In this document: one piece after another, positions 1,869-28,980 of the stretch
How positions within the stretch are numbered: the stretch's first letter is position 1
Layout of the letters: every line of letters begins with the position of its first letter
Origin: Utricularia gibba
Taxonomy: Eukaryota; Plantae; Magnoliophyta
Direction: 5' to 3'
DNA length: 64,000 nucleotides
Assembly: GCA_002189035.1 (NCBI GenBank)
Contig: NEEC01000017.1
Span: 62,001 to 126,000 of the forward strand
Notes under the pieces: generated by a model
Seen by the model: only the letters and a program-made list of their open reading frames with translations
Told to the model about the DNA's origin: nothing
Database searches by the model: none
Translations under genes and position numbers: made by a program

Positions 1869-3245
1869 ATGGGTTGGTTTTCTTGCTCCGCTGAATCCGC
1901 CGTCGCAACCTGCGATTCCCAAAACTGGGAGCTTTTGATCGCCAGGAGCAGACAAGATGACAAACGACGCCCCTTCCAGATCACCGAATTCTCTTTTGCA
2001 GATCTTTGTTCCGCAACGGATGCCTTTTCCGCCAGGAATCTACTAGGGAAGGGCAGCCATGGCTCCGTTTACAGAGCTCAACTAGGAAGCCACCTAGTTG
2101 CCGCAGTGAAGAGGACGAAGCAGCAACCCCATCTCACTGAAACCGCTAATAACGAGGTAGACATTCTATCCAGAATTTATCATCCAGGGCTAGTCAACTT
2201 AATCGGTTTCGCCGTCGATCCCACCAACCGGAAACTCATCGTGGTGGAGCACATGCCCAATGGATCGCTGTACGATCTCCTGCACTGCCCCTCCGTTAAG
2301 CCTCCGGGATGGGTTAAGAGGGCTCGATTCGCGCTGCAGATTGCCAGGACTCTTAATTTTTTGCATTCATCCAGTCCGCCCGTCATTCACCGCGACATTA
2401 AATCCTCCAACGTTTTAATAGACTCCAGATACAACTCCCGAATCAGCGACTTCGGTTTGGCACTTAGAGGAAACGTGGAAGACGTGAGGATGAGGAGCAC
2501 TCCGCCGGCGGGAACGCTGGGATACCTCGATCCCGGCTACCTTGCGCCGGGGGATATCAGCACCAAATCCGACGTCTTTAGTTTCGGAATCCTCCTGCTG
2601 GAGATCATCAGTGGAAGGAACGCCATAGACCTCAACTACAGTCCACAGTCGGTGGTTGAATGGGCAGCGCCATTGATACAATCCGGTAATATCCCCTGGA
2701 TCTATGACCCTCGGTTGGCCCCCCCAGACGACGACGAGGCCCTCCAACAAATGGCAGTTCTGGCAGAAAGTTGCGTGATATCAAAGGCCGTGAATCGGCC
2801 GACGATGGCGGAGGTGGTGGCAACTCTGAACAAGTTGTACCAGCGCTTGAGAAGGCAATCCCAGTTGCGGAGGTGCGTGAGTTTCGGGAGGCGCGTTGAG
2901 AGCGTGGTGAAGGAATCTCGTGTGACCCAGTTCCATTACCAGCCACTCCCAGTCGAGGACGTGTCCCGTAAGTCAGGCGGTGGCCGGAGGAGCGGGAAAG
3001 TGTCATCCAGTACGAGGACTAGGGCAGAGTGCGACGCAGCTGGCGGTGGCTTTACTAGTGCGAGTATTGCAAGGTCCAAATCAACCGGGGCAGCGGGCAC
3101 CACATCGACACCTAGAAGCAATCAGGCGGCTCCCGCTGATCAACGGTGCATGGCCGTAGGTAGCAGCGAGAAGAATAAGATGACCAGAGCGACACTGCGT
3201 AAATCCAGGTCAACGGGGTTCTACATGGGAAGACGATACTACTAA
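1869..3245 (+). CDS. Receptor-like cytoplasmic Ser/Thr kinase (RD kinase, CR4-related/At3g51990-like), single exon, 458 aa
   Basis: Intact motifs GKGSHG, AAVKR, HRDIKSSN, DFGLA, PPAGTLGYLDP, DVFSFG. N-terminal MGWFSC suggests myristoylation/palmitoylation. No transmembrane or ectodomain; S/T/R-rich tail. Subfamily assignment from memory. Confidence 0.92.
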   Translation: MGWFSCSAESAVATCDSQNWELLIARSRQDDKRRPFQITEFSFADLCSATDAFSARNLLGKGSHGSVYRAQLGSHLVAAVKRTKQQPHLTETANNEVDILSRIYHPGLVNLIGFAVDPTNRKLIVVEHMPNGSLYDLLHCPSVKPPGWVKRARFALQIARTLNFLHSSSPPVIHRDIKSSNVLIDSRYNSRISDFGLALRGNVEDVRMRSTPPAGTLGYLDPGYLAPGDISTKSDVFSFGILLLEIISGRNAIDLNYSPQSVVEWAAPLIQSGNIPWIYDPRLAPPDDDEALQQMAVLAESCVISKAVNRPTMAEVVATLNKLYQRLRRQSQLRRCVSFGRRVESVVKESRVTQFHYQPLPVEDVSRKSGGGRRSGKVSSSTRTRAECDAAGGGFTSASIARSKSTGAAGTTSTPRSNQAAPADQRCMAVGSSEKNKMTRATLRKSRSTGFYMGRRYY

Positions 3246-5199: not shown

Positions 5200-5420
5200 C
5201 CTTGCGACGGCTGTCTGGCATCCGGCGGCGTCCTCTCCTCTGTGTAACGGGCTTGATGTTATAAAACACTGGAGAGTCATATATGGGCTTCACGGATCTT
5301 GTCGTGTGGGGAACACACGTGTACGGTTGTAGACAGTACAGTATTATGATTTTGTTAAGGGGATTTTAATGACAAAATTATCATTTTATTCTTTGAAATT
5401 ACTATGTTTTTCATTTCTTT

Positions 5421-6560
5421 TGATGTTGATTCTGCAAGTGCACAAAAATCATCGAAGTAATAAAATAAGATCGTATTCATAGGGAATTATTATTAGAATT
5501 CTCTTTTCAAAACAAAGACTTAAAAAAGTTGAAAACAAAAAAAGATTTGGTTTTTGAAAACAATAAGAAAAGTGGATTTGGATCTAAAATCCATCTTACT
5601 TGAAATTCGCCATTTCATATGTGCAAACCTTGAAAACTGACTTGCTTGCGCAAGTTTTGAGGGTGTTATACTACAATATTGCTACTCGGTGACCATTATG
5701 GCACCGTCCCTTGTTTTGTGGGATTATAGAATCAATCACGCCACCAGAGTCATTTCACCTCTTGTGATAACCCATGTTTTCCCCACACCTAAATCTAACC
5801 CCTACACCTCACACCTCGTAGACAGATTAGACAGAATGTGCCTTACCAACGATATCCGATTGAGCCATTCTCCTTAGATGCTAAAAATCATGTTGGTAAA
5901 GAAAACGTTGCGAAAAACAGAATCAGAACTGAAATTAAATGTTAAAAAACATAGTAAGACAGTCACACGCGCAGAACTTGCATAAGCAAGGTTTCACAAC
6001 AGATCCTCAGCCGCAAGCACTCACATGCGCATGTTCGACTCTAAACAACAAAAGTTGATGGAAAACGAAAGTAAAGGAATCCAAAACATGCTAGACTCGA
6101 TTCTAAACCCTAAATTGACTCTCTGGTCATCCACCTTGACTAACTTTTGATCTTCACGTTTGGATCTTTATATAATGGTGGAGACTGATCGGGCTTTCTT
6201 AATGGGCTCACATCAAATCTTCTATTCGGATCTTCTAAGATTTGATACAAATCTTCTAGGATAAGATCCAACTTTTCTAAGATAAAATGCGAATCTTATC
6301 TTATCCGAGAATCTTTGACCGAATGTTCATCCAGATAGACCGAATCTTTGCCTCCATCAAAGTAGCTCGAAAATCCCCCAAATTATGCCAAAATTATCAT
6401 GAAAAATCACAAAACACACTTTCCCTCCAAAAAGATCAAAATTGTATGAAAGATATAAAATTCTTCTAAAAACATAAGAAAAGTAGGATAAAAAGAATGC
6501 AAAACCCATTTAAGTGAGTCTTAAAAAGCAAAAATATAAATGATACAAAATCACTTATCA
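5421..6560 (-). repeat. 3' LTR of Athila element A
   Basis: Direct repeat of ~13959-15120 with scattered substitutions and a ~55-bp indel (present at ~14403-14457 only). Abuts the PPT (GTGTGGGGGAGT on the minus strand). Confidence 0.93.
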
Positions 6561-6572
6561 ACTCCCCCACAC
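6561..6572 (-). promoter_or_regulatory. Polypurine tract (3' PPT); a second, internal PPT lies at ~7782-7795
   Basis: Plus-strand actcccccacac directly next to the LTR; ttcccccccacacttaaa-type copy just downstream of integrase. Confidence 0.85.
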
Positions 6573-7904
6573 TTAAATGTTTGCTTGTCCTCAAGCAATT
6601 GTTCAAGGCATTTTCCTTCAAAATAGTAACTTGCAAATATAGTTAAGGCAACAATATGCCTAAGTTGTTCAATGGCATACCATACCCTAGCCCCCCTTGC
6701 ACGTAGCTACTCTTCACATGTGTCACTCAATACGCTCAAGAAGAGAAATCCATAAGAGGGTAAGATTAAAAAGGTTCACTCAATACCTGAATGTAGGCGA
6801 GTCAGTGAACTTGCGCAAGTGATCTACCAGTTTCAGCAGGCTTGTGCAATCATGAGGTCTTTTTTTTTCGGGTTGTAGCGCGCAGGAGATTGAGACAGGT
6901 GGGAAATTCGGTTGGAGGCTTCATTTCATGGGTAATAAGGAGTGAACATCCATCAAACAGTTCTGCCATGCTTGTCCTTTGATTTTCGTACTCCAATAAA
7001 CTCCTCTTTCAGTTTTATGGCTTGTTCCAATCTTTCACTCTCTTTTCTCTCTTCTTCTCATCTTCTTCTTCTCTTTTTCTTTTTTTTTCTTCTCTTTTTT
7101 TTTTTAAATCAACTCTCTTTTGAACAAGATGTTATTGAAAATCCTTTCATAAATTGTTGAGCTAGAGCTTGATCAGTGAATTAAAAATTGCTCTCAACTT
7201 TTCTTCTTTGTAATAGAGCTCCTGGTTCTACAACTTGCGCAAGCAAACGAATAGAACTATTTTCCAGATGCTCATTCCTTGGGTCAAGAGAAATTGATGT
7301 AGGCTATAATTGACAAAACGGATTTGGCTTCTAATGTGGGGATCCAAATAAAAGCTTTTAGGCCAAGCGGGTCTCACTAAGTGGATTCATGGTGGGATAT
7401 TGGGATAAAACAAGGCAAATCCTAGTGCCTCAATCCTTTTGCACAAGACCTGTAGAATAACTCAGCAGTATGCACAAGAACAAGTCTATGATCATTCTAC
7501 ATTCAAGTCACTCATAATGAAAAGAGAATGATCTTCTCACCAAGAAACTAGGGCTATGTAGCTTGCGCAAGGAACACAAAGTAATCAGCATGCCAAGAAA
7601 CAACATAGCAACAAGCATACCAAAATTCTAATTTACAGCAATTATCTCGAAAAAATAATACCAAAAATAGATGTCTAAGTTCCAGCAAAACATAAAATGC
7701 AAGGAGTTGATCAATGAAATATATGCCAAATTTCAAAAAAAAATTTAAAGGTATAAAAAAAACAATCTAAAAAGTAAACTATTCCCCCCACACTTAAATA
7801 ACATCTTGTTCTCAAGATGGGCAGAAACACTTACCTTTCGTCAGGTGCTCTGATGTATCTAATAGTGTGGAATTTTTCATCAAAAGTATCCATTGCACCT
7901 GTGA

Positions 7905-10900
7905 TTATTGAAGAGAAGGAAGAAAAGAAAAACAATGCAAGAGAAAATCGAAAATAAAATAACTAAAAGGGAAATCGCTTGTTTTTGTGTGGCAAGAAGC
8001 AAACCATAGGTCTTTTTCATGAAGGTGGGGGTGGTTAGAGAGATCCACTGGAACATGCAATGTGTCCATGGAAGATTTTACCCCTTCATGAAACCGTTTC
8101 AATCTCTGAATATTTACTGTAAATTCTCCATGATCAGGATGAGTGATGAGGACTGCTCCACTGCGGTAGATTTTCTTGATGGTGTATGATCCACGCCATC
8201 TGGACTTGAGCTTTCCTGGAAATAAACGAAAACGAGAATTAAATAACAAAACTGTGTCACCTTCTGCCAAGCCTTCGTTTGTTCCTTGTACAGTTTTGCA
8301 TTTTCGTAGGCACTCATCCTTAGCTCGTCCAACTCTTGGAGTTGCAAGATCCTTTGCTCTTCAGTAGCCTTGGCATCCAAATTTAATTCTTTGATAGCCT
8401 AATATGCCTTTTGCTCTAATTCCACAGGCAAGTGACAAGCTTTCCCATAAACCAAACGATAAGGGGAGGTCCCTTAGGGAGTCTTATACGCTGTGCGATA
8501 AGCCCATAAAGCATCAGTTAATTTGATTGCCCAATCCTTGCAGGTTTTGCCCACCGTACGCTCCAGAATCCCGTTCAATTCCCTGTTAGTTACCTCCACT
8601 TGTCCGTAGGTTTGTGGGTGATATGGGGTTGATGCCCTGTGTCCTACTCCATACTTGCGCAAGAGCTTCCGGAATTCTCTTTCAATGAATTGTTTTCCTC
8701 CATCACTTATGACATATCTTGGCGCACCAAACCTGGGTAGAATGATCTTTTCGAAGAGCTTAATTACAGCTCTTGTATCAGCTGCTGGAACCACGATAGC
8801 TTCTGCCTATTTTGAGACATAATCCACCACCACAAGAATTTGAGTGTTGCCATATGAAGATGGAAAGGGTCCCATAAAATCCAGCCCCCAAACATCGAAA
8901 ATTTCCACCTCCAGGATATATGTCATGGGTCCTTCATCTCTCCTGAAAATAAAACCCGCATGCTGACATGGTTCGCATGCTTGAACAAATGCCCTCACAT
9001 CATGATTCATGGTGGGCCAATAAAATCCAAATTCAAGAATTTTGAAGAGTGTTTTTGATGCTGCTAGATGCCCTCTATATGGTGATGAATGGTAATGCCA
9101 AATAACATCCCTTACCTCCTCTGGTGGTAGGCATCTTCTGATAATCCCATTAGCACAACGTTTGAAAAGCAGAGGTTCTTCCCAGAAATAATGCCTCGCT
9201 TGCGCAAGGAAGCGCCTCCGCTGGTTGAAGTTTAGATTCTGGGGCAAGACTCCTCCAACGAGATAATTGACAAAATCATCATACCATGGTAGATTGCCGT
9301 CTTGGATAACAAGGATACGTTCTGTGGGGAAAGAATCATTAATGGGCAACTCCCCACACTTGTTTCAAGCTATAGGCATGACAAATGATCAGCTACTCCA
9401 TTTTCCTTGCCCTTCTTGTCACGAATTTCAAAATCAAATTCTTGGAGAAGTAGTATCCATCTTATCAACCTGGGTTTCGATTCCTGCTTGCTCAAAAGAT
9501 ATTTTAAGGCAGCATGATCCGTGTGAACAATTACCTTTGCACTCAGCAAGTAGGACTTGAATTTTTCAATGGCAAACACAATTGCCAGCAACTCCTTTTT
9601 TGTGGTTTTGTAGTTCATTTAGGCTATATTGAGAGTTTTGTTGGCATAATAAATCACATGAATTACCTTGTCTTTTTTCTGTCCAAGAACAGCCCCTACA
9701 GCACAATCACTTGCATCACACATCAGTTCAAATGGCAAGGTCCAATCTGGTGGTTGAAGAATGAGTTCAGTGATAAGAGCTTGCTTCAGCGTGTTGAAGT
9801 CATGCACACATTCTGCATCAAAACAAAAATTCGTGTCTTGTGCAAGTAGCGCTGTTAGTGAGCGAGAAATGTGAGAAAAATTAACCATAAATCTCCTATA
9901 AAATCCTACATGCCCCACGAAGATTTTGATCCCTTTTACCGTAGTTGGTGCTGGTAATTTTTCAATCACCTCGATTTTTGCTGGATCTACTTGAATGCCT
10001 TTAGAAGAAATGTGATGTCCAAGCACAATGCCTTCTTCAATCATAAAATGACATTTCTCCCAATTGAGTACCAAGTTGCACTCAATACACCTTTCCAAAA
10101 TGATGCCTAAGTACTGCAAACATGAATCTAAATCAGTCCCATAAATAGATATATCATTCATAAATACCTCGATGATCTTCTCCACGTGTTCTGAAAAAAA
10201 TGACTGTCATGCATGTTGAAGAGTTCTAGGAGCATTGCACAAACTGAATGGCATTCTCTTGTATGCAAAGGTGCCAAAAGGACAAGTAAATGTGGTCTTG
10301 TGTTGATCTTCCGAATGAATTGGAATCTGAAAATATCTGAAATAACCATCAAGGAAACAATAGAAAGCTTGGTTACTTAACCTTTCCAGAATTTGATCAA
10401 TAAATGGCAATGGGTAATGATCCTTTCTAGTGGCATCATTGACTTTCCGAAAATCTATACACATCCTCCAGCCAGTGACCTTGCGCAAGGGGATGAGGTC
10501 TCCCTTCTCGTTTTGTGTCACTGTCATGCCTCCTTTTTTTGGTACGTAGTGTATTGGGCTAACCCATTGGCTATATGAAATAGAGTAGATGATCTCAGCA
10601 TCTAGTAATTTTAGAATTTTTTTTTTAATCACCTCCTTTAGCATAGGATTTGCCTGCCTTTGTGGTTGCACAATTGGTCTTGCCTCAGCTTCCAAATAAA
10701 TCCGATGAGTGCAGAATTGAGGGTGAAGCCCTTTCAAGTCATCCAAGGTGTACCCAATGGTTTGTCGGCGCTTGCGCAAGACATCCAGCAGCATTTGGGT
10801 GTGGTATTCACTCAATCCTGCGTTCACAATCACTGGGTAAGTGTGATATTCCTCAAGAAATTCGTACCTCAATGATGGTGGCAGCTTCTTCAACTCAATT

Positions 10901-13754
10901 TTGCTTCCAGCATCAAGTTCCTTCTTTGTTAGTGGAGCCATCATTGGTGTGTCATCTGGAGTGTCTTCTTTTTCATCCTGCAGAAGATTTACATCCTGAA
11001 TTTCATGCAAAAAAACTGCTTGTGCATGCTCCTGCATAACAGCATCTTTCGCTTCCCCTTGCGCAAGCTCGTCACAGTCAAATCGTTTCATTGCGTGATC
11101 AACATTGAACTCCAGTTCTTCTTCTCCGAATCTGAGTGTCAATTTCCCTATTCTAAAATCAATGAAGGCTCCTGTGGTTGCCATAAAGGGTCTCCCAAAA
11201 ATAATTGGTACCTCCACATCAAGTGCCATATCCAAAACAACAAAATCACAAGAAACAAAATATTTTCCAATTTTTACCGGCACGTTTTCTACTACGCCTT
11301 CAGGATTCTTCATAGATTTATCAGCAAATACCAGCTGAATTTTTGTGGTTCTCAGCTCCTCAAGATTCAATGCTTTGAATAAAGAATAAGACATCAAGCT
11401 GATACTTGACCCAATATCATACAAGCACTTCTCAAAATTGCTTCTTCCAATGATACAAGGGACTGAAAAAATTCCAGAATTTGCATGCTTTTGAATCAGC
11501 CCATCACATCTGTGAATGGAATTTCGCATAAGTGGGCATTTGCAACATCACATCAGTGAATGGAATGTTCACATGGAGAGTTTTCAGCATCTCCAGAAAC
11601 TTGGAATATTGTTGATCCACTGACGATTTGACATGTCTCTGTGGATAAGGGATTAGAGGATTATAAAAAGGTGGAGATATGTATACTAGAACATCCAGCA
11701 ATTCGTCTGCTTGCACAGGGGCTGCTATTGCACTCTGCATTCCACTCCTCGTTGCCACAGCTTTGCATTCAGCATGATTTTTCTCTGGCTGAATTGGGAG
11801 CCTTGAAGCCTTGTGGGTTTGAGCAACATTATTCATCCGACTGTCTAGAATGCGAGTTGTTATCCCGAGTTGCTCTAGACGCTCATTCATTTCATTCACC
11901 CTTGTCTTTTGGTCTGAAATTTCTCCTCTTATTTGCTTAAGTTGTTCAGCCACCAATCCATTTACTTGTTTGATTTGCTCCAGCATTCCTTGGTTAAGCC
12001 CTTCCTGTTTCTCCATGAATTGATTGAGCGTATCTCGTAAGAATGGTCGTTGGGGCTGCTGCTGGTTCTGATTCTGGTTCTGCCAAGTGTTGCCTCGATT
12101 TCCCCAATTGTTCCCTTGCGCAGGCATAGAAGCTCCTTGCACAAGTTTTCCCTGAAAAATTCACAAAATTAACATTCTTACCTTCCTCTTCTGGCTCACT
12201 CTCTATCTTCTCTGAGGCTGCTTGGACTTGAGCAATGACAGGCTGGAGTTTGCTGATTTTATCGTCTAATTTTTGCAATGTTTCGGAAATCTTTGAGACG
12301 GTAGTGTCACATGGGTTGTCCCGAACTCCAGTTTTCAAATTCCTTACTGGTTGAGACCATCGTGCCTGTCGTTTTGCAAACTCATCAATTAGTTCCCAAG
12401 CTCTTCTAGGACTTACCTGGTCTAGGGGTCCAACACCCGCATTCAACAGTCCCTTTGCTTGCACAGTGAGTCCATCATGAAAGCACATGATCATAGCAGC
12501 GGGGCTGAGTCCATGCTTAATCGTGACTTGTGTAATTTCCTTAAATCTCTCCCAAGCTGCTGCTATTCCTTCTCCTTCATCCTGTGAAAAATTGGTGATC
12601 TCAAACCTGGTGTTCGAGTACTTCGTGGGTTCAAAATATTTGTCCAAAAATGCATCCTCCAATTCTTGCCAAGTGTAAATAGAGTTGGGTGGCAAAGAGT
12701 CTAACCACCTCCTTGCTAATTCCCATAACGAAAATGGAAATAAACTTTACTTGATCGCATCGTCAGAGACTCCTCGTTCCACCACCATGTCACAATACCT
12801 GAGAAAAATTACAATGTGTTCTTCGGGAGCCTCTCCAGGTTCTCCATGAAATGGGCTTTGTTGCACCATGGTGATCAATGAAGGCTAGAGTTGGAATCTT
12901 CACACGTTGATGGCTGGTGCTGAAAATGGACCAAGCTTCCTCATGTGTCAAAAATTATCACCTAGAGGAACTTCATCCTAAGGATCAACAGCAAATCTGT
13001 TAGCATTCTGCTCCCTGCGCACGTACCTGTCTTTTCCTGGGCGATGATTTCTGGCTTGTGCAGGTTGTTCCCTGCGTGCTGGTTCTGGTCCTTCCTCTTT
13101 GCTAGATGCTTCTTCAGTACACACATTCCTCTTGGGTATCTGCCTTTGTCTTTCATGATTTTCCCTTTCAGGATTTCCTATAAATTCATACCTCTGCTCG
13201 TGATGAGGATTTTGGTTGTCACGTCGGTTTGATCCATTGTAACCCCAATGGTCTTCTCCTTCCCACCTTGGAGGAGAGTTCACTCCTCGCCTTGGAGTTC
13301 GTGGGTTGCTGTTCTGCTCATCATGATGTTGAGGTTCAAAAGCCTTGTTTTCCTACCATCCTTGCACAAATGTTGATTGCCAACGGTTTTCATTTGTGCC
13401 TGCGTGCCTAGGCCTTCCTAAACCACGTTCCAGCACCCTGTTGGTTCGTCCTGGGCCTGATAATGCGCCTGTGGGCCCTTCTCGGAGAGGTTCCATGCCT
13501 CGATTTCTTCCCAATCTTGCTGTTGTTCGTTCTTGTGCAGGCTATTGATCAGATCCATCGCTACGCCTTCGATATACCCCTACACAATTAGTAGTCGATC
13601 TGCATATACCTGTTCTTTCATTTGTCATCAAGGCTGATCTAGTGGCCCTATTTGGCTGGTGTCTGGGCGTTCGTGCTCGTTCGCTATCTGGTTCGGACAT
13701 CACCAGATAGCCCTCCTCATGTCTAGAATGCCTTCTAGACAGGTTTCCCTGCAT
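7905..13754 (-). pseudogene. Athila gag-pol polyprotein, disrupted by stops and frameshifts
   Basis: Gag (TWQELEDAFLDKYF), protease (CLYDIGSSISLM), RT (WRMCIDFRKVN, FLDGYFRYFQI, VFMND with the catalytic DD changed to ND), RNase H (ELMCDASDCAVGAVL), integrase (WGLDFMGPFP, VISDGG, GQVEVTNRE) across several ORF fragments. Confidence 0.93.
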
Positions 13755-13958
13755 TGTGCTTGCGCTTGACGATTTTCCAACCTACTTCTTTGACAGGTCT
13801 GGTCAATTTGTAGGTCTAGCGGGTACAGCTCGGTTGAAGCCTTGTGCTTGCGCATGCAACACTCATTAAAAGCAACGGCTTGCGCAAGTGCACTAAATAG
13901 AATGTCTCAAAAATAAAAGAAAAATAAGAAATAATCATAAAAGAAATTCCAAAGGAAT

Positions 13959-15120
13959 ACATAGAAATCGTCGAAATAATAAAATAAGATCGTATCCACA
14001 GGGAATTGTTATTGGAATTCTCTATTCAAAACAAAGACTTAAAAGAGGTTGAAAACAAAAGAAAGATTTGGTTTTTGAAAACAATAAGAAAAATGGCCTT
14101 GGATCTAAGATCCATCCTACTTGAAACTCGCCCTTTCGTGTGTGCAAACCTTGAGAACTGACCTGCTTATGTAAGCTTTGGGGTGTGATGCTAAAATAGT
14201 GCTACTCGGTGACCGTTATGACACCGTCCCTTGTTTTGTGAGATTATGGAATCAACCACGCCACCAGAGCCATTTCACCTCTTGTGATAATCCATGTTTT
14301 CCCCACACCCAAATCTAACCCCTACACCTCACACCTCGTAGATAGATTAGACAAAATGTGCCTTACCAACGATGTTCGATTGAGCCCTTCTCCTTAGATG
14401 CTTGAGGCCAACCTTTAATTCTCCCATACTCCCTTAGAGCTATATGGTACTAAAGATCACGTTGGTAAAGAAAACGTTGCGAAAAACAGAATCAGAACTC
14501 AAATTAAATGCTAAAAAACATAGTAACACAGTCACATGCACAGAACTTGCGTAAGCAAGGCTTCACAACAGATCCTCAGCCGCAAGCGCTCACACGCGTA
14601 TGCTCGACTCTAAACAACAAAAGTTCATGGAAAACGAAAGCAAAGGAATCCAAAACATGCTAGACTCGACTCTAAACCCTAAATTGACTCTCTAGTCATC
14701 CACCTTGACTAACTTCTTTGATCTTCGCGTTTGGATCTTTATATAATCTGGGAAATTGTCGAGCTTTTTTAATGGGCTCACATCAAATCTTCTATTCGGA
14801 TCTTCTAAGATTTGATACAAATCTTCTAGGATAAGATCCAACTTTTCTAAGATAAAATACGAATCTTATCTTATCCGAGAATCTTTAACCGAGTCTTCAT
14901 CTGGATAGACCGAATCTTTGCCTCAACTCGAAAATCCTCCAAATTATTACAAATTCGTCCTGAAAAATCAAAAAACACACTTTATCTCCAAAAAGATCAA
15001 AGTGATATGAAAGATATAAATTCTTCTAAAAACATAAGGAAAGTGGGATAAAAAGAATACAAAATCAATCTAGGTGAGTCTCAAAAATCACAAATATAAA
15101 TGACATAAAATCAATTATCA
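13959..15120 (-). repeat. 5' LTR of Athila element A, with its 3' ~25 bp and the PBS missing
   Basis: Homology to the 3' LTR begins at ~13959; the TGATGTTGATTCT end and the tRNA-Asp PBS are absent. Confidence 0.85.
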
Positions 15121-15229
15121 TCTTTCTACGGACAATCAAAAAAAACCAAAGGTAATATTCACACAAAAGAAAGATATTCTACTAAAAAAGATTAATAATC
15201 ATTACCCCAAACAATGTAAAATGGCTTTC

Positions 15230-15414: not shown

Positions 15415-17747
15415 TGATGACACACGTTTTCTTTGCATTTTGTAATGCAAAATTGTTATGTTTTACTTAGGTTTAGGTTGGATTTGTGTGGTTTTCCATG
15501 TTTTATATGTTGTTTATGTTAATTTTATGTTGAAAAGTAGACAATCCTGATTTAATCCACCACCTTTGTTATTAATGTTTAATTAAATTCAGCAGGAAGA
15601 CTAGTATCAAATCAGACTCAAAGACATATGAATAAAGTTAAAGGGGCGCAACAGCCAAAAGGAGACAAAGAGCACTGTCTTACTGCCTGCAGTCTGCAAG
15701 TTCTAACCAAAAACAGCGCTGGTGTCAGGAACAATGCATTGAAGTAAAGGAGGGGAGATATTTTTCGAAAAAGAGAGCAGAAGCTTCATGAACAAAGCGA
15801 GCACACGAGAGGACTTCTCCTGCAACACGGAGAACACTGACGAGAAGAGAAGAGGGGCTTCATTCTCAAGAACATCCCTGATAAACGAAAACTATTGCAC
15901 ATCGTTAAAATGCAAATTTCTCCTATTAAATAAATTTATAACCTAATACACATTTAAGGATAATACAATTATGAGTATAGTGATTAGGGTCGAACACGAA
16001 GAGCAAGTGCTTGCGATGTGAAAGTCAATGCATGCAATCAGTGTCACGTTGATAGATTTGGTCTTAACTAGGATTAAGACAGAGTTGCGATAAAATACAT
16101 TAAAGAAAAGTAACAGATTTTTGAACTCGGTTGTTTCTAAGATGAAATGGGTGATGCCTTGGGATTCCTAGGGGATGTATGCTTATCATTAAACATACTC
16201 ACACAAAACATAAATAAAAAAACTAACAAACAAAGTCTAGGTTTACCCGGACTCTTTTTTCCCCTAATCTTTGGTCTACCTCTAATTAGGGTTATTAAGA
16301 TTGGTTTATCCTGGTTTCTTAAGGAAGTGGCATGACTTATGGTTGATTAGGTCTAAAAAATGATTAGCATATTTCTCCCCCAAGGCACCCCTAAGTGCTT
16401 AGTCACTTATGCTTAAGGTAAATGAAAATAAAAAAGAAAACATCATCCACATCGTACTCATCTCACAGCCACATACCAGAAAATAAACTAGCAAGGAATT
16501 AAAAAAGTTCAACATAAAGCTAGAATTGTCACATGCTACTCTTAGCTAAGAGTAATGCTCCTAAAAACATAAAGTTAATCTTCAAATTTCAATTTCGTTC
16601 TTTGTTCATCTTCCTCCTTCTTTCCCCAGAAATCTTCTCCAGAAAGCTGTGTCGTATGTCTCCAATGGGAGAGATATTTTTCTCCCTCCATCTTCCCCCC
16701 TTTTTTATCCACAATCCTCCTTTTTCTCTTCCATGGATTTTATGTACTCCTTTTCAAACTTTTGTCTCATCCTCTGCCACTACACTGTTCATATCTGGCT
16801 CCTTGGAATTCATGTTGCCGACATGTGCTTCATTGCTCAAAGAAAATATGTGTTATCACATTATAATACAACGACACTAGACTTGTCCTCAAGTCCTAAC
16901 TAAGACTAACAGGAGGTAAGCAATTGAGGGATTTCCAAACAGCCATAGAGAGACTTGACATTTAGGTTCAAAATGCCGGAATTGAAAGAGTGCCAATGTG
17001 CAAGACAGGTAATCACTCAAGTATACATATGAATTTCATCAAAATAAATGCCTTCAAAAATTAAATAAGCTAACATGACATAGTTAGACTTTCAATGGGA
17101 GACTCGTGGTCTCTTTTCATTTCTTCCTCTCTTCTTTTTTTTTTCTTTCATTTTGTACAGAGATCAAGATTAGGGAAGGTTCCAAGCTTAACTCAGGCAA
17201 TTGTTGCTCCCCTCCTTTGTATATGGAGTGTGGGCTAAGCACTTCTCTCGTTATTCCTCCTGAGGGTTTTCTACTCCTCTGAGTCATTCCAATAACCTCC
17301 CTTCTCTCTTTACTTTGTTGTCTACACAAGCTTTTTAATTGTGTGTCGCTTTTCAAGACATGAGATCTTATCGCTTTTCTTATGATGATGCTTTTCTGAC
17401 CCCCTCTTTTTCTTCATCTCTCTATAAGCCTTTCAACCACTAATATTCATGAAAGAACCAAATATGTTAGTTTGCAAAAAAAAAAAAAAATCTCAAATGC
17501 ACAAATCAGAATCCATTACACATGGTGCTACCTCATGAAGATAAGCAGGCTAAAAGTCATGCTTAAAAGTGTACAAATAGTTAAAGCAAAATTCATGCAT
17601 CTTGTACTTCATGAAAAGCACCACGCATGCATATGGAAATTGTTCAAATAGCTTGCAAAATTCTCTTGATTTTAGTACCCAACTACTAAATTATGCCTAA
17701 CTTAGACTAACAACTTAAAAATAAAAATAAGAGCAATGACAGCAAAC

Positions 17748-19026
17748 TTACTTGATCCGGGAGTAGTCCTTCACTCCCTGTTTCAATTCTTTTACTTCGC
17801 GCAACAAATTCCCAAGCCTATCATATATCATGTCGATCCTCTCCTTGCAGCAACAATCTTTTTGACTTCTTTGACTTGAAACTATCTGATCAGAAGTTTC
17901 TCCCTTTTCCTTCATTGAAGGTGCGTCCCCACAAAGTCTTGCAATTTTAGGAACAAATCCACCCTCTCGTGCCTGAATTAGTCCAATAGTTTTAAGAAAA
18001 TGAGCATTAAGAGGGGCCAGTTTCTCTTCTACATGCAAGAATTCCAGCTCAAAAATTTTCTTAGAGCATAACCTTTGAGCAAGAAAAGTGACAACACTAC
18101 CGAACCCAAGATGCTTTATGGTATTCATCCGATATTCCCTGTTCATTTTTTCTGCTAAAATCGCCCCTAAATTCAAAGGTTTCCTGTGCAACAAGCACCA
18201 CATGACAAACAAATCACGTTTTTATAGAGAATTAAATCCTAAGGCCCTACCAACAGCAGAAACAAGCAAGTGGACATATCGCATAGCAGGGTCTATAAAT
18301 AAATCAGCTTTCATCCCTTTGGATTTAAATTCTATCACATGTTGATCAGTTAAAATTTCATACACCTCTTTAGCATCAAAATCATCAGGATAATCAAACA
18401 ATGAGGTAGAAAATTCATGGGACTCAACATGTTGTTCTATACAAAAACCTAAAGCTACATTCCATTCATCAATTGATAATAAGAAATTCTTTCCTAGCAA
18501 TTTAAACGTGATGGCTGATGATGCAAACACAGTTTCTGATTTCTCATAACAAAAGGTACAAGCAAATTCATACATTAATTCAACATAAGAAGGACGGTTC
18601 AAATCACATAAAGCAAGCAGCGCAGAATCCTCTAAATTGAATGAACTTCTGTAACTATGCCCAATTCCACCAATATTTCGAAATCTATGATCCGACAAGG
18701 CAGCACCCTTGCCCATTTTACCTCATTGTACCTGGCTGTAATTTCTTCTTCATCAAAGTGTAGGTACGTGAGGTTGACCATTTGTACATGTTGCTTGAAG
18801 TAGGGGATGCCTTTGCTGGTCATTTTTCACTGTGATTTACCTTTCTCTACCTCTTCAACCCTACATGAACTCAAGAACAGTGGAACAAGGTTAGGTAAGA
18901 ATTTTTCTCGTTTCGTTTGTACCTCATGTCCTCCTCGCTGGCATTTTTCTGCAACTCCTTTACTGTTTGTTTAGGTTCCTTTTGCTTCCTTGTTTTGCTC
19001 CTTGTCCTCTTTGCAATTAAGGCCAT
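17748..19026 (-). pseudogene. Athila env-like/ORF-1-type accessory ORF, frameshifted
   Basis: ATG at 19026 (MALIAKRTRSK..), followed by fragments SYVELMYEFACTF..FKLLGKNFLLSIDEWNVALG and LNLGAILAEKM..FGSVVTFLAQRL. Position 3' of where pol would lie and motif pattern match Athila accessory ORFs as recalled from memory. Confidence 0.6.
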
Positions 19027-19989
19027 ATTTTTTTTTTACTTCTACTTCTCAAAAAAATCAGAAGTACAAATAAATCAGAACAATACATAATTTTACTTAT
19101 TACTTCTTACTTTTTAACTACTTCTACTTGTTTTAACTTTGAGTTACTTCTTACTTCTTACTTCTTATTCTTACTTCTCATTGTGAATTTACAAATTTAT
19201 CCTTCATTATAAAAATATATTAAATATTTCATCCTATTTCCATGAATTCTATTCCCTTCGACAATGCTCTAAGGTTTGGAGATTTCACACAATTGTGATT
19301 TCAATTTCCGGAATTGAATAACATGTTTTTTAGGAGTAATATTTGCTGGAAGTTCTTTATAATTCCTAAGGTAATGCCTTTTTTGTTACTCCAGTTTTGT
19401 TTCATTTTTTCCGATAGTAATCGCAATCTAAATTGGATACTTGCTTCTTAATCAATGTGGAGAGAAATACGTGAGTTGTGGGTGAGATTTTCTTTTTAAT
19501 TACATTTAATGTTGTGGTTGAGTTGATGCTACTTTTGTTGCATTTAATGGTTGAATTTGGACTGGAACTTCGTTGTATCAATTTTGTTTCATTTTTTTAA
19601 TAGTAATGGCAGTCTGAATTGGTTCCTTTCTTCTTAACCAAGGTGGAGAGAAATACGTGAATTTTGACTGAGCTTTTTTTTAATTGCATTTAATGTTGTG
19701 AGTTTTGGCTGAACTTTTTCACTATGAGATTGGAAACGTTGCACTATTTTGCTCAAAAAAAATTATGGGTTGTAAAAATATTAATACCTTATCAGATACA
19801 TTGAGGTATTAATTTATGACTTACTCTGCGTTTTAACGTTGCAGTAATTTTTCATGCTTAATGGTTTATTTTTTTTCTGTTACTTTATTAATATAGATAT
19901 GTTTTCAACTGATCCTAGTATATTTCTTAAATTTTTTCTTTTGTTTTTGACTTTGTAACATAGTGATGTACAAGGGGAAAAAAGTGCTG

Positions 19990-20735
19990 GAGGTAATGAA
20001 ACTAACAGAAAGGTAGTGCGAAATGGGAGCAGATTTCTGGATGAGTTTTTTTATTTCTCGAGATTTGCCTAGCTGAAATTCGTGGTGGGAATCAACCTAA
20101 TACCTCATTCAACAAGATTGGTTGGTTGAATATTCTCAATAAACTAACTAGTCAAATTGAAGATGAGTATTCAATGAAACAAATCAAGAATAAGTGGTGT
20201 GATCTTCGAGCATTATGGACTTTGTGGATTCGACTTGTGAATTGGACTGGTGTAGGTTGGGATACGACAAAAAACACAATACTTGCTAATGATGAATGGT
20301 GAGTAGAAAGGATTACGGTAATTTATTCTTTAAGTTTGTTCATTCTATTTTAATGCTTTACATTATAGGTTTTAGTAGTATTTGATGCTTTGTATGGTGA
20401 TTATTTGGGTTTTGTTGTTTAATTTTCTTGCTTATAAAAGAATAAGGAAGCTAAAAAATTTTATGATGGAAGAACTTTTCGATGGTATTATTGCCACTGG
20501 TCAAGATAGCTACACCCCAAGCTCTAGAATTCTACTAGCAGAAATGGATGATGAAGTTGAATGTGTCCCTGAGACAGAGGATAATACTTTTGATTGGACT
20601 TATGAACCTGTGGTTAATGACTTTGGTACACCACCTTAAGGTCAGAGTGTTAGTCGTATATCTGGCAACAGTTTATGAAAAGAACAACCAAGGAAACAAA
20701 AGAGTAGAAAGGGAAGTAACTCAGACATTATCGCG
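19990..20735 (+). pseudogene. PIF/Harbinger Myb/SANT-like DNA-binding ORF fragment
   Basis: Translation FLEICLAEIRGGNQPNTSFNKIGWLNILNKLT..MKQIKNKWCDLRALWTLWIRLVNWTGVGWD.TKNTILANDEW*; later exon EELFDGIIATG. Homologous to the Myb ORF at 39420-39740. No TIRs found. Confidence 0.75.
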
Positions 20736-21809
20736 AAGTTCAATAGAAAGCTAGAATTGTCACAGGTTACTCTTGGCTAAGAGTAATGCTCCTAAAAAAA
20801 GAAAGTTAATCTTCAAATTTCAACTTCATTCTTTGTTCATCTTCCTCCTTCTTCCCCCAAAAATCTTCTCTAGAAAGCTGTGTCGTATGTCTCCAATGGG
20901 GGAGATCTTTTTCTCCCTCCATCATGCCCCCTTTTTTGTCCACAATCCTTCGTTTTCTCTTCCTTGGATTTTGTGTACTCCTTTTCAGACTTTTGCCTCA
21001 TCCTCTACCATTACATTGTTCATATCCGGCTCCTTGGAATTTGTATTGCCGACATGTGCTGCATTGCTCAAAGAAAACTATTAGAAGTAAGGTTGGAACT
21101 AAATCATAGATTTAGTCTCAACTAAGACTAAAATAACACAACTATGGTACTATGCGCAAAAATATAGAACTAAGTAGTAAAACTTAAGTTTTGTAGAAAA
21201 ATATGAGTCATTTCCCTATATTCAATTACTCAAAAATATGTGTTATCAAGCCCTAGAGCCCAGTCCAGCGCTACTATTCTGAGTCGTGAACAGTAGCTAA
21301 CGGGCATTAAAACAATCTTTATTTCCTTTTGATTTACTAAACGCTTTGAGTTTTTGTATCTGACTTATTTACAATGTTATTTTCACTACATTATCTAAAT
21401 GAAATCATGTTTTATCTTTCAAGTATGCGTAGCTAGAATCTTAGGGATGCCTTAAGGTGAAATATGGTGATGTGGGTCTAGGGTTAATAATATAATTCAT
21501 GTTTGTTTCTTAGTTATTGTTTTTATCATTCCATGGGTAGATTTAAGGAGGAGAACAAGTGGCTTTGCAACTCAAATACTTGATTTAGAGGTAGACCAAC
21601 AAATCAAAATGGGAGCAATAGGTAATAGTCTAGAGTAGAACCAGTACAACTGGGTAGAACTAGTTATATGCACTTTGCATGCGCCTAGATCTAATTGCAA
21701 TATTGGTGATGATATTAGGGATTCACTTAGCCAAAAATATGATGAATGACCTGGGTAGACTTAAATTATTTAGAGTTGTGAGTATAGGAACATGGTAAAT
21801 TAAATTAGC

Positions 21810-22765
21810 CATTCTATGGCAATTCCCGCAAGGCATATTCTTGGCTTGGAATAAAAAGAGTTCCTTCATCATCTCAAACATAGCTGCCACATTTTTCGTC
21901 AGCTCATTTTCTGATGACTTTGGCTTGCATTCCAGCTCATATACTCTTCTATTCGAGGCCTGCTTTCTGATTATGTGCCTGGAATGCTCAGCCAACTTCT
22001 CAAGTAGCGCAAGAGCTTCTGTGGGAGTTTTTTTTCTAAAAAACCCACCTGCTGCAGAATCCACCATGGCCCTATCCGTGCATAGAAGACCATCATAAAA
22101 ATACTTGACCAATGTATTGGTCTGAAATCCGTGGTGTGGACAGGAGCCTAGCAGGTGATTAAACCGCTCCCAATATTCATGTAGAGATTCTCCACTTGTT
22201 TGCTCAATGTCACTGATCTCCTTTCGTATCCCTTCAGCCTTGGAAGCAGGGAAATACTTGCTGAGAAACACCTTCTTCATCCTTGATCAATCCGTGATAC
22301 TTCCAGGCTTCAAAGAGTTGAACCACGTTTTTGCACTCCCTTCCAGTGTAAATTGGAATGCCTTCAAGCAGATGGCATCCTCAGTCATCCCAGCACTCTT
22401 AAAAGAGGTGCAAACAGCAGTAACATTATCAAGATGTTCATGTGGGTTCTCACCCACTTTTCCATAATACTTTGGCAGAAAATTAATCATAGCTGGCTTC
22501 AATTCGTTGGTTGTGTCATCGAGAACCTAATACACAGCCCTATGTACATGTGGTCAGCTGCATCAAGCTCATTCAGGGTCTTCTCCTGTTCTGCCATATT
22601 GAAATTAGCTTGAGTAACAGCAGGGAGTCTGCTCAACCTTACTGCTTCTCTCACTCTTGTGCGGTTCTTGCTGATAGTTCTCTCGATTTCTGGGTGGAAA
22701 ACAAGATCTCCTGCACAAGAAGAACGCAAATGCATCAACCGAATCACAAAACAATTAAACACCAC
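21810..22765 (-). pseudogene. Athila gag fragment (family C)
   Basis: DLVFHPEIERT, PKYYGKVGENPHEHL, AFQFTLEGSAKTWF, FLSKYFPASK, ESLHEYWERF, with stops; truncated at ~21810. Confidence 0.88.
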
Positions 22766-22783
22766 TCCCCGGAAATGGCGCCA
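22766..22783 (-). promoter_or_regulatory. Primer-binding site, tRNA-Asp type
   Basis: Minus-strand TGGCGCCATTTCCGGGGA 3 nt inside the LTR end (..GTTTATCA at 22787); near the Athila PBS TGGCGCCGTTGCCGGGGA. Confidence 0.85.
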
Positions 22784-22786
22784 ATT

Positions 22787-23495
22787 TGATAAACAAAAAA
22801 TTTACACGTCGTAAATGTAAATCTTGCTATCAAATAAATTTACAACCTAATACACATTAAAAACAATACAATTATGAGCATAGTGATTAGTGTCGAACAC
22901 GAAGAGCAAGTGCTTGCTATGTGAAAGTTGATGCATGAAACTAGTGTCACGTTGGTAAAATTGATCTTAGCTAGGACTAAGGCAGAACTAAAACGAAATA
23001 CAGTAAAGAAAAGTAATAAGTTCTGGAGCTCGGTTGTTTCTGGAATGAAATGGGTGATGCCTTAGGACTCCTAGGGGATGTATGCTCATCATTAAACAAG
23101 CTCATACAAATCACAAATCATACAACTAACTCAAAAGGTCTAGGTCTACCCGAACTCTTGTTTTCCCGCCTAATCGTTGGTCTATCTCTAATTAGGGTTG
23201 TTAAGCTGGGTTTCACTACTTCCCCCTCCTGGATCTATCTTGGTTTGTTAAGGAAGTGGCGTGATTTATGGCTGTTTAGATCTAAAGATTGATTAACATG
23301 TTTCTCCCCTTTTCACCCCAAGGCACCCCCTAAGTACTTAGCCACTCATATTTGAGACAAACGAAAATAGAAAAGAAAACATCATCCACAATGCATTCAT
23401 GTCTCAGTCGACTACTAGAAGATAAACAAGCAGGAAACTGAAATGTTCGATAGAAAGCTAGAAAACGTTGCTAGCTAATCTTAGCTAGGAGTAAT
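22787..23495 (-). repeat. Partial 5' LTR, family C
   Basis: Co-linear with 51814-52525 and 15879-16555. Confidence 0.85.
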
Positions 23496-27992: not shown

Positions 27993-28980
27993 ACCCAAGC
28001 GCGGGGCACCCTACAGTTTTTTCAGTTGATGATGTATACACAACACAACAGACATTCTTTCTTAACTTTTATTGGTTATGTACACTCCTGAAGCGATGGC
28101 TGGGCAGGCCCTCAAAAGCTCTAATTAACCAGATGCATTGAACCACTATACTATTCAGTACTGATTTACGAAGACGTGGGGGTAGTTGCATTAGTATACA
28201 TATTTGTTAGGCTTCAACTTCAAAATCAACTCAAATGTGGAGGCTTTTCTCCCAGGTTCTCCTTGAGGGTCGCCGTCTCCTCCATCATCCGTACACAACA
28301 TGGTTATTGGTGTAGGATCCAACTATGATGTTCATCGGTGCATTCACTGATCAGCAGCGGTGATGGTTTGCCAAGTGTGCTTGTGAATGCATTCACGCAA
28401 TTGCTAAGCAGAGTGTTCAATAACAAAGATCAGAAACCAAGACAATTACGAATTCAGAACAACGACGAATTAAACAGCATTGCAACAACCAATACGAAAA
28501 AACTGGAAAGTTGGGCAAGTTGATCAGGTGATCATATCCACGTTTCACGTTCGTGGGTAATTTTGCGTCCAGCACTGCCTTGTCCTGCACTTCTGCTGAC
28601 ATGGTTTCATAATCTATCTGGCATGATGTGCTTACTGATGCTGGCTTGCCTTCAATTCAAGAAGCAGTAGAAGTAGAAGAAGAAGATACCAACAAATAAT
28701 ACACTTTTTCATCCACTGGGAAGTGGAATTCGATACCATCCCGACGCTTGAAGTTTTCCATAGATAGGATTCTTATGTCTTTTCTGTCGGCTCCATATTC
28801 AGCTCCCTGACTCACAACTCCAATTCACGATCCACTAATTCGTGCTTACGGAAGAATTCCAGGCTTCGCAATGTTTTTTTTCTTCTTTTCTTCTTTTTGT
28901 TTTTTCCTTTTCCTTTTTCTCTCTTCATAAGTCGTGCAACACTGCTGCAACTGGACTGGGGTTTGCGTCGTCGCCCCGCC

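Follow-up and report, generated by a model that had tools for sequence, protein, structure and literature searches.

The window, that is, the whole 64-kb stretch of DNA that was analysed, contains an old and degenerate LTR retrotransposon on its minus strand (Table 1). Features of Ty3/gypsy membership are present, namely two LTRs, a target-site duplication and a polypurine tract, and the domain order on the minus strand according to Pfam (gag-PR-RT-RNaseH-INT) is that of Ty3/gypsy elements. The LTR pair has diverged by 9.3% (78 transitions and 26 transversions), and comparison with long homologues by tblastn, used for counts only, gave at least four frame changes and at least three in-frame stops in gag-pol. 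A 10-mer of the polypurine tract is found again at 7786-7795 and 9352-9361. No chromodomain after the integrase was detected in the Pfam search or in the reading frames of the element. No env-like frame was found between the integrase and the 3' LTR, where 1.3 kb hold only short frames without family matches; such a frame may have been lost through degeneration. The original prediction had assigned the element to Athila, and this stands in part: the RT has an Athila/Tat-type signature, but no env-like frame remains. The closest homologues have the same extended RT segment around the motif site described below, and none of the matches is named Athila. The element has neither a VANC-like gene nor any other extra DNA-binding gene, and no frame beyond gag-pol has a domain match.

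Table 1. Features of the retrotransposon and positions of the palindromic motif within it.
Feature	Position	Strand	Location or evidence
Whole LTR retrotransposon, Ty3/gypsy, Athila/Tat-type, old and degenerate	5421..15120	-	LTR pair, domain order, ends
Target-site duplication, 3' side, AAAGA on minus strand	5416..5420	-	same five bases at 15121-15125
Target-site duplication, 5' side, AAAGA on minus strand	15121..15125	-	
3' LTR	5421..6560	-	alignment and blastn; starts TGATAA at 6560; motif exact at 5645, decayed at 5977
5' LTR, inner end approximate	13940..15120	-	decayed motif copies at 14166 and 14546
Polypurine tract adjoining 3' LTR	6562..6574	-	
gag-pol, broken	7905..13283	-	Pfam matches; tblastn with long homologues
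gag, capsid-like	~12465-12692	-	Pfam, approximate
Protease	~11164-11430	-	Pfam, approximate
RT	~10009-10630	-	Pfam, approximate
RNase H	~9400-9820	-	Pfam, approximate
Integrase zinc domain	~8957-9127	-	Pfam, approximate
Integrase core	~8615-8920	-	Pfam, approximate
Exact motif	5645..5654		3' LTR; aligns to CTTATGTAAG at 14166 of the other LTR, three transitions apart
Exact motif	6810..6819		non-coding, between integrase and 3' LTR
Exact motif	7234..7243		non-coding 3' region
Exact motif	7562..7571		non-coding 3' region
Exact motif	8654..8663		integrase core, frame gives L-R-K
Exact motif	9199..9208		integrase N-terminal region, frame gives L-A-Q
Exact motif	10480..10489		RT, L-R-K where conserved T-R-L/T is usual
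Exact motif	10771..10780		upstream of RT core, frame gives L-R-K
Exact motif	11058..11067		variable linker after protease, frame gives L-A-Q
Exact motif	13879..13888		5' leader, just inside 5' LTR
One-mismatch copy, central CG to TG	9837..9846		RNase H region
One-mismatch copy	12115..12124		gag
One-mismatch copy, central CG to CA	12136..12145		gag
One-mismatch copy	13847..13856		5' leader, 32 bases from the exact copy at 13879
One-mismatch copy	14546..14555		5' LTR; 3' LTR partner at 5977 has one further transition

A perfect 10-bp palindrome, CTTGCGCAAG, occurs ten times in the window, and all ten exact copies lie inside this one element, at the positions originally predicted and with no further copy in the 64 kb. 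Shuffles of the window gave a mean of 0.02 exact copies and a maximum of 1, and the palindrome is the most over-represented 10-mer of the element. The five copies with a single mismatch also lie within the element, which bears out the claim that the motif is specific to it within the window. Copies with two mismatches number 14 in the 9.7 kb of the element, where approximately 3 are expected, versus 17 in the remaining 54.3 kb, and 17 of the 19 matches to the transition-degenerate pattern YTTRYRYAAR in the window (7.8 expected) fall in the element. Overall, about 15 decayed copies are spread along the whole element beside the ten exact ones. The variants listed in the original prediction were mostly recovered, although the one given at 14547 starts at 14546 and nothing motif-like is present at 13035, the nearby variants being located at 13014 and 13055; those at 13361 and 13532 have two mismatches.

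Alignments of proteins and of LTRs are gap-free at the motif sites, and the copies therefore arose by substitution and not by insertion. Nor do they constitute a repeat, since the sequences that flank them share no similarity and no tandem array found by TRF contains the motif. Their spacing is irregular, in line with the earlier view that this is not a tandem repeat.

The two LTRs offer two pairs of sites, 5645 with 14166 and 5977 with 14546. Because a copy in one LTR is matched in the other by a copy decayed through transitions, the motif was present before the element inserted, with an estimated 17 to 26 sites at that time. Variants inside the element show 20 transitions versus 13 transversions, mostly at the central CpG, whereas near-matches outside show 10 versus 24, which is the chance ratio. 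This agrees with the decay of methylated cytosines that had been proposed for the variants. The CpG has been lost at approximately 10 of 26 inferred motif sites, against about 19% of CpGs per LTR copy. The rate of decay at motif CpGs was thus no lower than that at the remaining CpGs, which gives no sign of methylation protection in this copy.

The gag-pol region contains five exact and several decayed copies. The exact ones fall within reading frames of pol and encode L-R-K in three cases and L-A-Q in two, as had been claimed, and non-coding sites are used as well as these two frames; the motif is not a codon artefact of one peptide. The frames used are the only two that avoid Cys-Ala. Comparison with 61 to 269 homologues revealed rare or absent residues at four of the five coding sites. 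At the RT site (10480), where the motif was thought to replace the usual residues, L-R-K is found in 0 of 269 homologues and T-R-L or T-R-T dominate; relative to the related fragment L124, 8 of the 10 motif bases differ versus 4 of 23 flanking bases. Likewise, L-R-K at the integrase core site (8654) occurs in none of 61 homologues, L-K-K being the commonest, and L-A-Q at the integrase N-terminal site (9199) occurs in 1 of 114, where F/L-x-D is usual. At 10771, L-R-K is present in 34 of 254 homologues (13%) and L-K-S is the commonest. Across homologues, L-R-K and L-A-Q have densities of 0.17 and 0.10 per 1000 residues, respectively. Conserved R, L or K residues are retained at the coding sites, where the homologues already encode part of the motif. 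These partly pre-encoded sites, together with the frames free of Cys-Ala, fit a stepwise gain in a lineage whose proteins were still needed.

The motif is absent from relatives of the element. It has zero copies in seven control sequences (three other transposon regions in the window, the related loci L121-L123 and fragment L124). When the longest pol frame and a piece of the integrase were used as protein queries, the best identities were 55-69%. A scan of metagenomes for pairs of motif copies separated by about 280 bases returned 120 stretches, none related to the element and most of them tandem repeats in which the string happens to occur, and scans of viral and prokaryotic genome collections returned only two small contaminant fragments, both without the motif. 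The related element L121 holds four copies of a different 10-mer palindrome, in its LTRs and in an LTR-like duplicated segment. As in the present case, a palindromic 10-mer recurs in an element of this clade, but it is found in LTR-type sequence only, with conserved flanks and with no copy in coding sequence. Transcription-factor sites in LTR promoters are an ordinary feature. A clade-wide habit of dispersed palindromes was rejected, given this confinement in L121 and the lack of such palindromes in L122 and L123.

The homologue counts at the RT site (0/269) and at the two integrase sites (0/61 and 1/114), together with the clustering of the substitutions, point to selection at the nucleotide level acting against protein conservation. 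Selection on the nucleotide sequence of the motif in this lineage is well supported. As to what reads the motif, our first choice, a tentative one drawn from one element copy, is a cis-acting signal recognised by a sequence-specific protein that binds double-stranded DNA as a homodimer, with RNA self-pairing as the second. The classical site of a homodimer has the form seen here, a perfect palindrome made up of two 5-bp halves. Moreover, the 8-bp core of the motif is the canonical animal C/EBP bZIP palindrome (PMC9630826, PMC6144830), as was originally recognised. The outer C and G are retained at 10 of 10 exact sites, and since C is an unfavourable 5' flanking base for mammalian C/EBP-beta (PMC6144830), the reader would not be C/EBP-like in the strict sense. 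No plant factor for the 10-mer was found in the searchable literature.

Under this preferred reading, active ancestors would have gained the palindrome site by site through point substitutions, and the signal would have spread over the LTRs, leader, gag, pol and 3' non-coding region. The reader would occupy two adjoining 5-bp half-sites as a homodimer, the simplest candidate being a host factor of the bZIP-like kind. With a site every few hundred bases, this factor could be held along the whole integrated copy or the cDNA, where it may affect chromatin state or transcription through activation, anti-silencing or tethering. Since insertion, the sites would have decayed like ordinary methylated DNA. 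Several observations count against a dimeric protein: identity over ten bases at many sites is stricter than in most sets of transcription-factor sites and would suit base-pairing equally, the element has no extra DNA-binding domain, the basis is a single decayed copy, and this copy gives no sign of methylation protection. The idea that the motif is read by an extra protein of the element, with a plant mobile domain or of another kind, was rejected because the element has no such frame. By the same token, the proposed retrotransposon counterpart of VANC did not hold beyond analogy, the element having no VANC-like gene.

The second reading, which we regard as unlikely, is that the copies, each self-complementary in the genomic transcript and thus able to pair with any other, pair within or between genomic RNAs, zipping two RNAs together or compacting them for packaging. 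In principle, RNA self-pairing fits the palindrome equally well. It would expand on the palindromes that start dimerisation in retroviruses and yeast Ty1, and the leader is the usual place of dimerisation and packaging signals. The predicted energy of the motif paired with itself over 10 base pairs is -15.3 kcal/mol, the requirement for all ten bases fits base-pairing, adjacent copies pair together in predicted folds, and the density of copies is highest in the leader adjoining the 5' LTR (13879 and 13847, with variants at 13759, 13532 and 13361). Ty1 RNA dimerisation needs palindromes in the 5' region (PMC6844567). However, local folds around paired sites are no stabler than those of shuffles (z from -0.04 to -1.14), the majority of the copies are distant from the leader, and known dimerisation signals comprise one to three sites and not about twenty. 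Abundant intramolecular pairing could also impede translation and reverse transcription, and an Rfam search gave no family match. The idea that paired sites form conserved hairpins or are helically phased was considered and rejected, with 7 close pairs versus approximately 4 expected and folds that are not significant.

It is very improbable that the motif has no function and is the by-product of mutational bias, short-patch conversion, or chance combined with peptide or codon bias. A single copy of the family was seen, and the tripeptide at 10771, one of the five coding sites, is shared with 13% of the homologues. This reading has to account for ten copies where 0.02 are expected, for sites in two reading frames and in non-coding sequence, for several substitutions toward the same 10-mer at each site, and for the scarcity of L-R-K and L-A-Q in homologues. 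It would need a mutational process that writes one fixed 10-mer at unrelated places, and we know of none. An assembly or polishing error, an adapter remnant or a planted sequence is hardly credible, unusual as ten exact copies are, given that the copies are in frame and gap-free, that decayed copies show the transition pattern of the element itself, that the two LTRs hold matching intact and decayed copies, and that, at the coding sites, part of the motif is already encoded in homologues.

In transposons, short motifs bound by proteins have been described in promoters, in leaders and in arrays outside coding sequence. In the present case a strict 10-mer is found in every part of a retrotransposon and is paid for by unusual enzyme residues. 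Its presence throughout the element at a cost in residues implies a signal that is needed along the full length of the DNA or RNA. A bolder proposal, rather unlikely in our estimation, is that this lineage recoded its whole body, conserved RT and integrase residues included, with about twenty copies to serve as a landing pad for an anti-silencing dimeric factor or as a zipper of two genomic RNAs. In either case, the strategy would be one so far undescribed for a retrotransposon. Confirmation in family copies would provide a sequence handle on the chromatin interaction or RNA packaging of a retrotransposon lineage, and the proposal is testable in existing plant data, namely genome assemblies, methylomes, accessibility maps and binding-specificity catalogues.

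Among known systems, the Drosophila gypsy element carries an array of Su(Hw) binding sites in its 5' untranslated region. It is likewise a Ty3/gypsy element with many copies of one short motif, and the density in the leader is the highest here too. However, the Su(Hw) sites are not palindromic 10-mers and cluster within a short part of the non-coding leader, a few hundred bases long, whereas the present copies are mostly dispersed across 9.7 kb, gag and pol included. The VANC anti-silencing proteins bind short motifs in the VANDAL21 DNA transposons of Arabidopsis. That system, mentioned in 10.1101/2024.09.27.615353, shares with the present one an element-specific short motif accumulating in one transposon lineage. 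It differs in that VANDAL is a DNA transposon that encodes the binder and in which the motifs pile up in non-coding parts, while the present element is a retrotransposon without a binder gene and with motif sites also in coding sequence.

The resemblance to C/EBP-type palindromes consists of identical central eight bases and of two 5-bp half-sites that meet at a CpG; the outer C and G not favoured by C/EBP-beta, the plant host and the lack of a known plant factor for the string set the motif apart. The RNA dimerisation palindromes of retroviruses and Ty1 (PMC6844567) are also short self-complementary sequences in the RNA of a retroelement, and several of the present copies lie in the 5' leader. 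These are, however, one to three sites in defined structures near the 5' end, in contrast with the roughly twenty sites here, which are dispersed and lack significant local structure; in the present element the leader holds two near-exact copies, most copies lie elsewhere and local folds are not better than those of shuffles. Finally, according to PMC8754650, ZEBRA of Epstein-Barr virus is a viral bZIP protein that binds CpG-containing sites in a methylation-dependent manner. The likeness lies in a bZIP-type site centred on a CpG, within a genome silenced through methylation by its host, and the difference in an animal virus that encodes its own factor and in a methylation-dependence that is not indicated here. 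The parallel with ZEBRA offers a conceptual route by which such sites may counter silencing.

The motif-bearing interval is a single LTR retrotransposon on the minus strand (5421-15120), flanked by a 5-bp target duplication, with a polypurine tract adjoining the 3' LTR. Pfam matches follow the Ty3/gypsy order (gag, protease, RT, RNase H, integrase). The RT has the extended segment that its closest homologues also show, and no chromodomain was found in the element; given these two features, the Athila/Tat group fits. The original prediction had called the element Athila; the RT signature supports this at the level of the Athila/Tat group, but membership in Athila proper is unproven, as none of the matches is given that name by any source and the sequence downstream of the integrase retains no env-like frame. 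This is an old copy: its LTRs diverge at 9.3% of aligned sites (78 transitions, 26 transversions), CpG loss is ∼19% per LTR copy, the CpG observed/expected ratio is 0.45 to 0.52, and gag-pol is disrupted, with at least four changes of frame and three or more in-frame stops (counts only).

Features of the window and of the motif-bearing element (window positions; coding motif sites named by start coordinate)
Feature	Position	Strand	Description	Homologues with tripeptide	Usual state
Protein kinase gene	1869-3245	plus	intact, single exon, 458 codons; 2.2 kb from element
3' LTR	5421-6560	minus	∼1.14 kb
Palindrome CATGCGCATG	6024-6033		in 3' LTR
Polypurine-tract 10-mer	6565-6574	minus
Pyrimidine-rich tract	7031-7121		non-coding 3' region
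Polypurine 10-mer, exact recurrence	7786-7795	minus
Polypurine 10-mer, exact recurrence	9352-9361	minus
Motif site	8654		integrase core, L-R-K	0/61	L-K-K
Motif site	9199		integrase N-terminal, L-A-Q	1/114	F/L-x-D
Motif site	10480		RT, L-R-K	0/269	T-R-L or T-R-T
Motif site	10771		upstream of RT core, L-R-K	34/254	L-K-S
Motif site	11058		linker after protease, L-A-Q		variable region, no dominant state
5' LTR	∼13940-15120	minus	∼1.14 kb, approximate inner boundary
LTR-retrotransposon-like region	15954-23443		adjoins element; internal direct repeats, minus-strand gag frame; no motif copy
EF-hand and sodium/calcium-exchanger frames	25853-31013	plus
MuDR-type transposase fragment	33592-34716	plus
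Second Ty3/gypsy element	54404-58830	plus	Tf2-type SH3 integrase tail
copia-type gag	61704-62237	minus

The window is rich in transposons. The best matches of the kinase gene are Lamiales proteins with only 60 to 64% identity, which places the host among the lamiids, and the EF-hand and exchanger frames are possibly exons of one host gene. Within the element, the polypurine 10-mers that recur inside it may be extra internal polypurine tracts; the one at 7786 partly shares ∼18 more upstream bases. The pyrimidine-rich tract, purine-rich on the element sense strand, is long and contains degenerate short repeats. The second perfect 10-bp palindrome has the same six central bases as the motif, and its counterpart in the 5' LTR is decayed.

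The motif, CTTGCGCAAG, occurs in 10 exact copies in the 64-kb window, all within 5645 to 13888 and all where the original prediction had placed them, versus a mean of 0.02 in dinucleotide-preserving shuffles. No 10-mer is more frequent in the element, and the 8-bp core of the motif does not occur elsewhere in the window. All five one-mismatch copies (9837, 12115, 12136, 13847, and 14546) lie inside the element, as do 17 of the 19 window matches to a transitions-only degenerate pattern. Two-mismatch copies number 14 in the element's 9.7 kb (∼3 expected) versus 17 in the other 54.3 kb. The earlier variant list needed two corrections, 14547 being 14546 and 13035 being empty, with variants nearby at 13014 and 13055. 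Copy density peaks in the leader. The bases flanking the exact copies show no mutual relation, spacing is irregular, and no motif-containing tandem repeat was found, in agreement with the original view that the motif is not a tandem repeat.

Protein and LTR alignments have no gaps across motif sites, which indicates that the copies arose by substitution and not by insertion. In the LTR alignment, the exact copy at 5645 is paired with CTTATGTAAG at 14166, three transitions away, and the pair 5977/14546 shows decay of the same kind. The motif is therefore older than the insertion of the element. Variants inside the element carry 20 transitions and 13 transversions relative to the motif, with the central CpG taking 13 of the 33 mismatches, versus 10 to 24 for near-matches outside, which is the chance ratio; the proposed methyl-C decay is thus supported. 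With ∼19% CpG loss and ∼4.7% other change per copy, the predicted survival of a perfect 10-mer is roughly 55 to 60%. From the 10 survivors we infer ∼17 to 18 perfect sites at insertion, or up to ∼26 counting the excess variants. Motif CpGs have decayed no more slowly than other CpGs, and therefore there is no sign of methylation protection in this dead copy; for active copies nothing follows from this.

Five of the exact copies fall within pol, in the two frames originally reported (three L-R-K and two L-A-Q); the third frame (Cys-Ala) is used by none of the five. The suggested replacement of the usual RT residues was borne out by the homologues. At this site, 8 of the 10 motif bases differ from those of L124, a related 60%-identical fragment, versus 4 of 23 bases in the flanks. 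The alignable coding sites each keep one or more conserved residues (R, L, or K), so that the motif arose where it was already partly encoded. This fits a stepwise gain of sites while the lineage still depended on its proteins, and argues against random overwriting or an artefact. The one decayed copy studied shows the motif to be a selected, lineage-specific nucleotide signal across the entire element.

A perfect palindrome has two candidate readers, a homodimeric protein or RNA self-pairing. We tentatively rank first a homodimeric protein, which would read the motif on double-stranded DNA. The motif consists of two abutting 5-bp half-sites, an architecture documented for the C/EBP family (PMC6144830), and the 8 bp at its centre are identical to the canonical C/EBP bZIP site (PMC9630826), in agreement with the likeness noted originally. 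Mammalian C/EBP-beta does not favour the conserved outer C and G as flanks (PMC6144830), and a different plant factor would therefore be needed. Ranked second, and rather unlikely, is pairing between RNA copies of the motif. The predicted self-duplex, calculated for the motif alone, has −15.3 kcal/mol, the leader is densest in copies, and Ty1 and retroviruses dimerise their genomes via palindromes (PMC6844567); however, local folds around the copies are no better than shuffles, and ∼twenty sites far from the leader are without precedent. That the copies are a by-product of mutation is improbable given their origin by substitution, their decay, and the evidence of selection at coding sites. Least credible is an artefact, which the pre-insertion LTR partners, the decay pattern, and the partly pre-encoded coding sites oppose.

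Seven control sequences were searched, namely, three other transposon regions of the window, the related loci L121 to L123 of another plant assembly, and L124. None of the seven contains the motif or its 8-bp core, and no 10-mer palindrome reaches five copies in any of them. In L121, another 10-bp palindrome occurs four times, confined to the LTRs and an LTR-like segment and with conserved flanks, which is an ordinary promoter case. No description of the exact 10-mer as a plant or transposon motif was found in the searchable literature.

The related element in L121 (1114-14611; ENA ERZ26165887) has ∼12 kb between LTR starts, with palindrome pairs in each LTR and in the internal LTR-like segment; the two LTRs do not differ over the compared 300-base stretch, which makes the insertion a young one. 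L124 (Streptomyces assembly BMQF01000181.1) and protein P0491 (labelled Salmonella) are plant retrotransposon fragments under bacterial names, most likely through contamination of those assemblies. Two metagenome contigs also carry the 10-mer. L092 (1-1970), small and plasmid-like with a RepB-type replication protein and a helix-turn-helix protein, has six exact copies and several variants, whose flanks are unrelated and which lie around the rep gene and upstream of it; this looks like a set of protein-binding sites in a replicon unrelated to the element. L112 (1-600; 60% G+C) has 10 irregularly repeated copies in 600 bases.

Among known systems, the VANC motifs of VANDAL21, a DNA transposon, need an element-encoded binder and sit in non-coding sequence; none of the VANC membership features tested was found in the element, which leaves the VANC counterpart originally suggested as an analogy. 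The Su(Hw) sites of Drosophila gypsy form a clustered array in the non-coding leader, whereas the motif is dispersed through coding sequence too. LTR promoter sites of the L121 type are restricted to LTRs, while the motif also occurs in pol, and RNA dimerisation palindromes are few and leader-located, in contrast with copies spread along the element's length. The copies can be placed among the motif arrays known from mobile elements, and their array differs from all of these nearest analogues in its dispersal through coding sequence.
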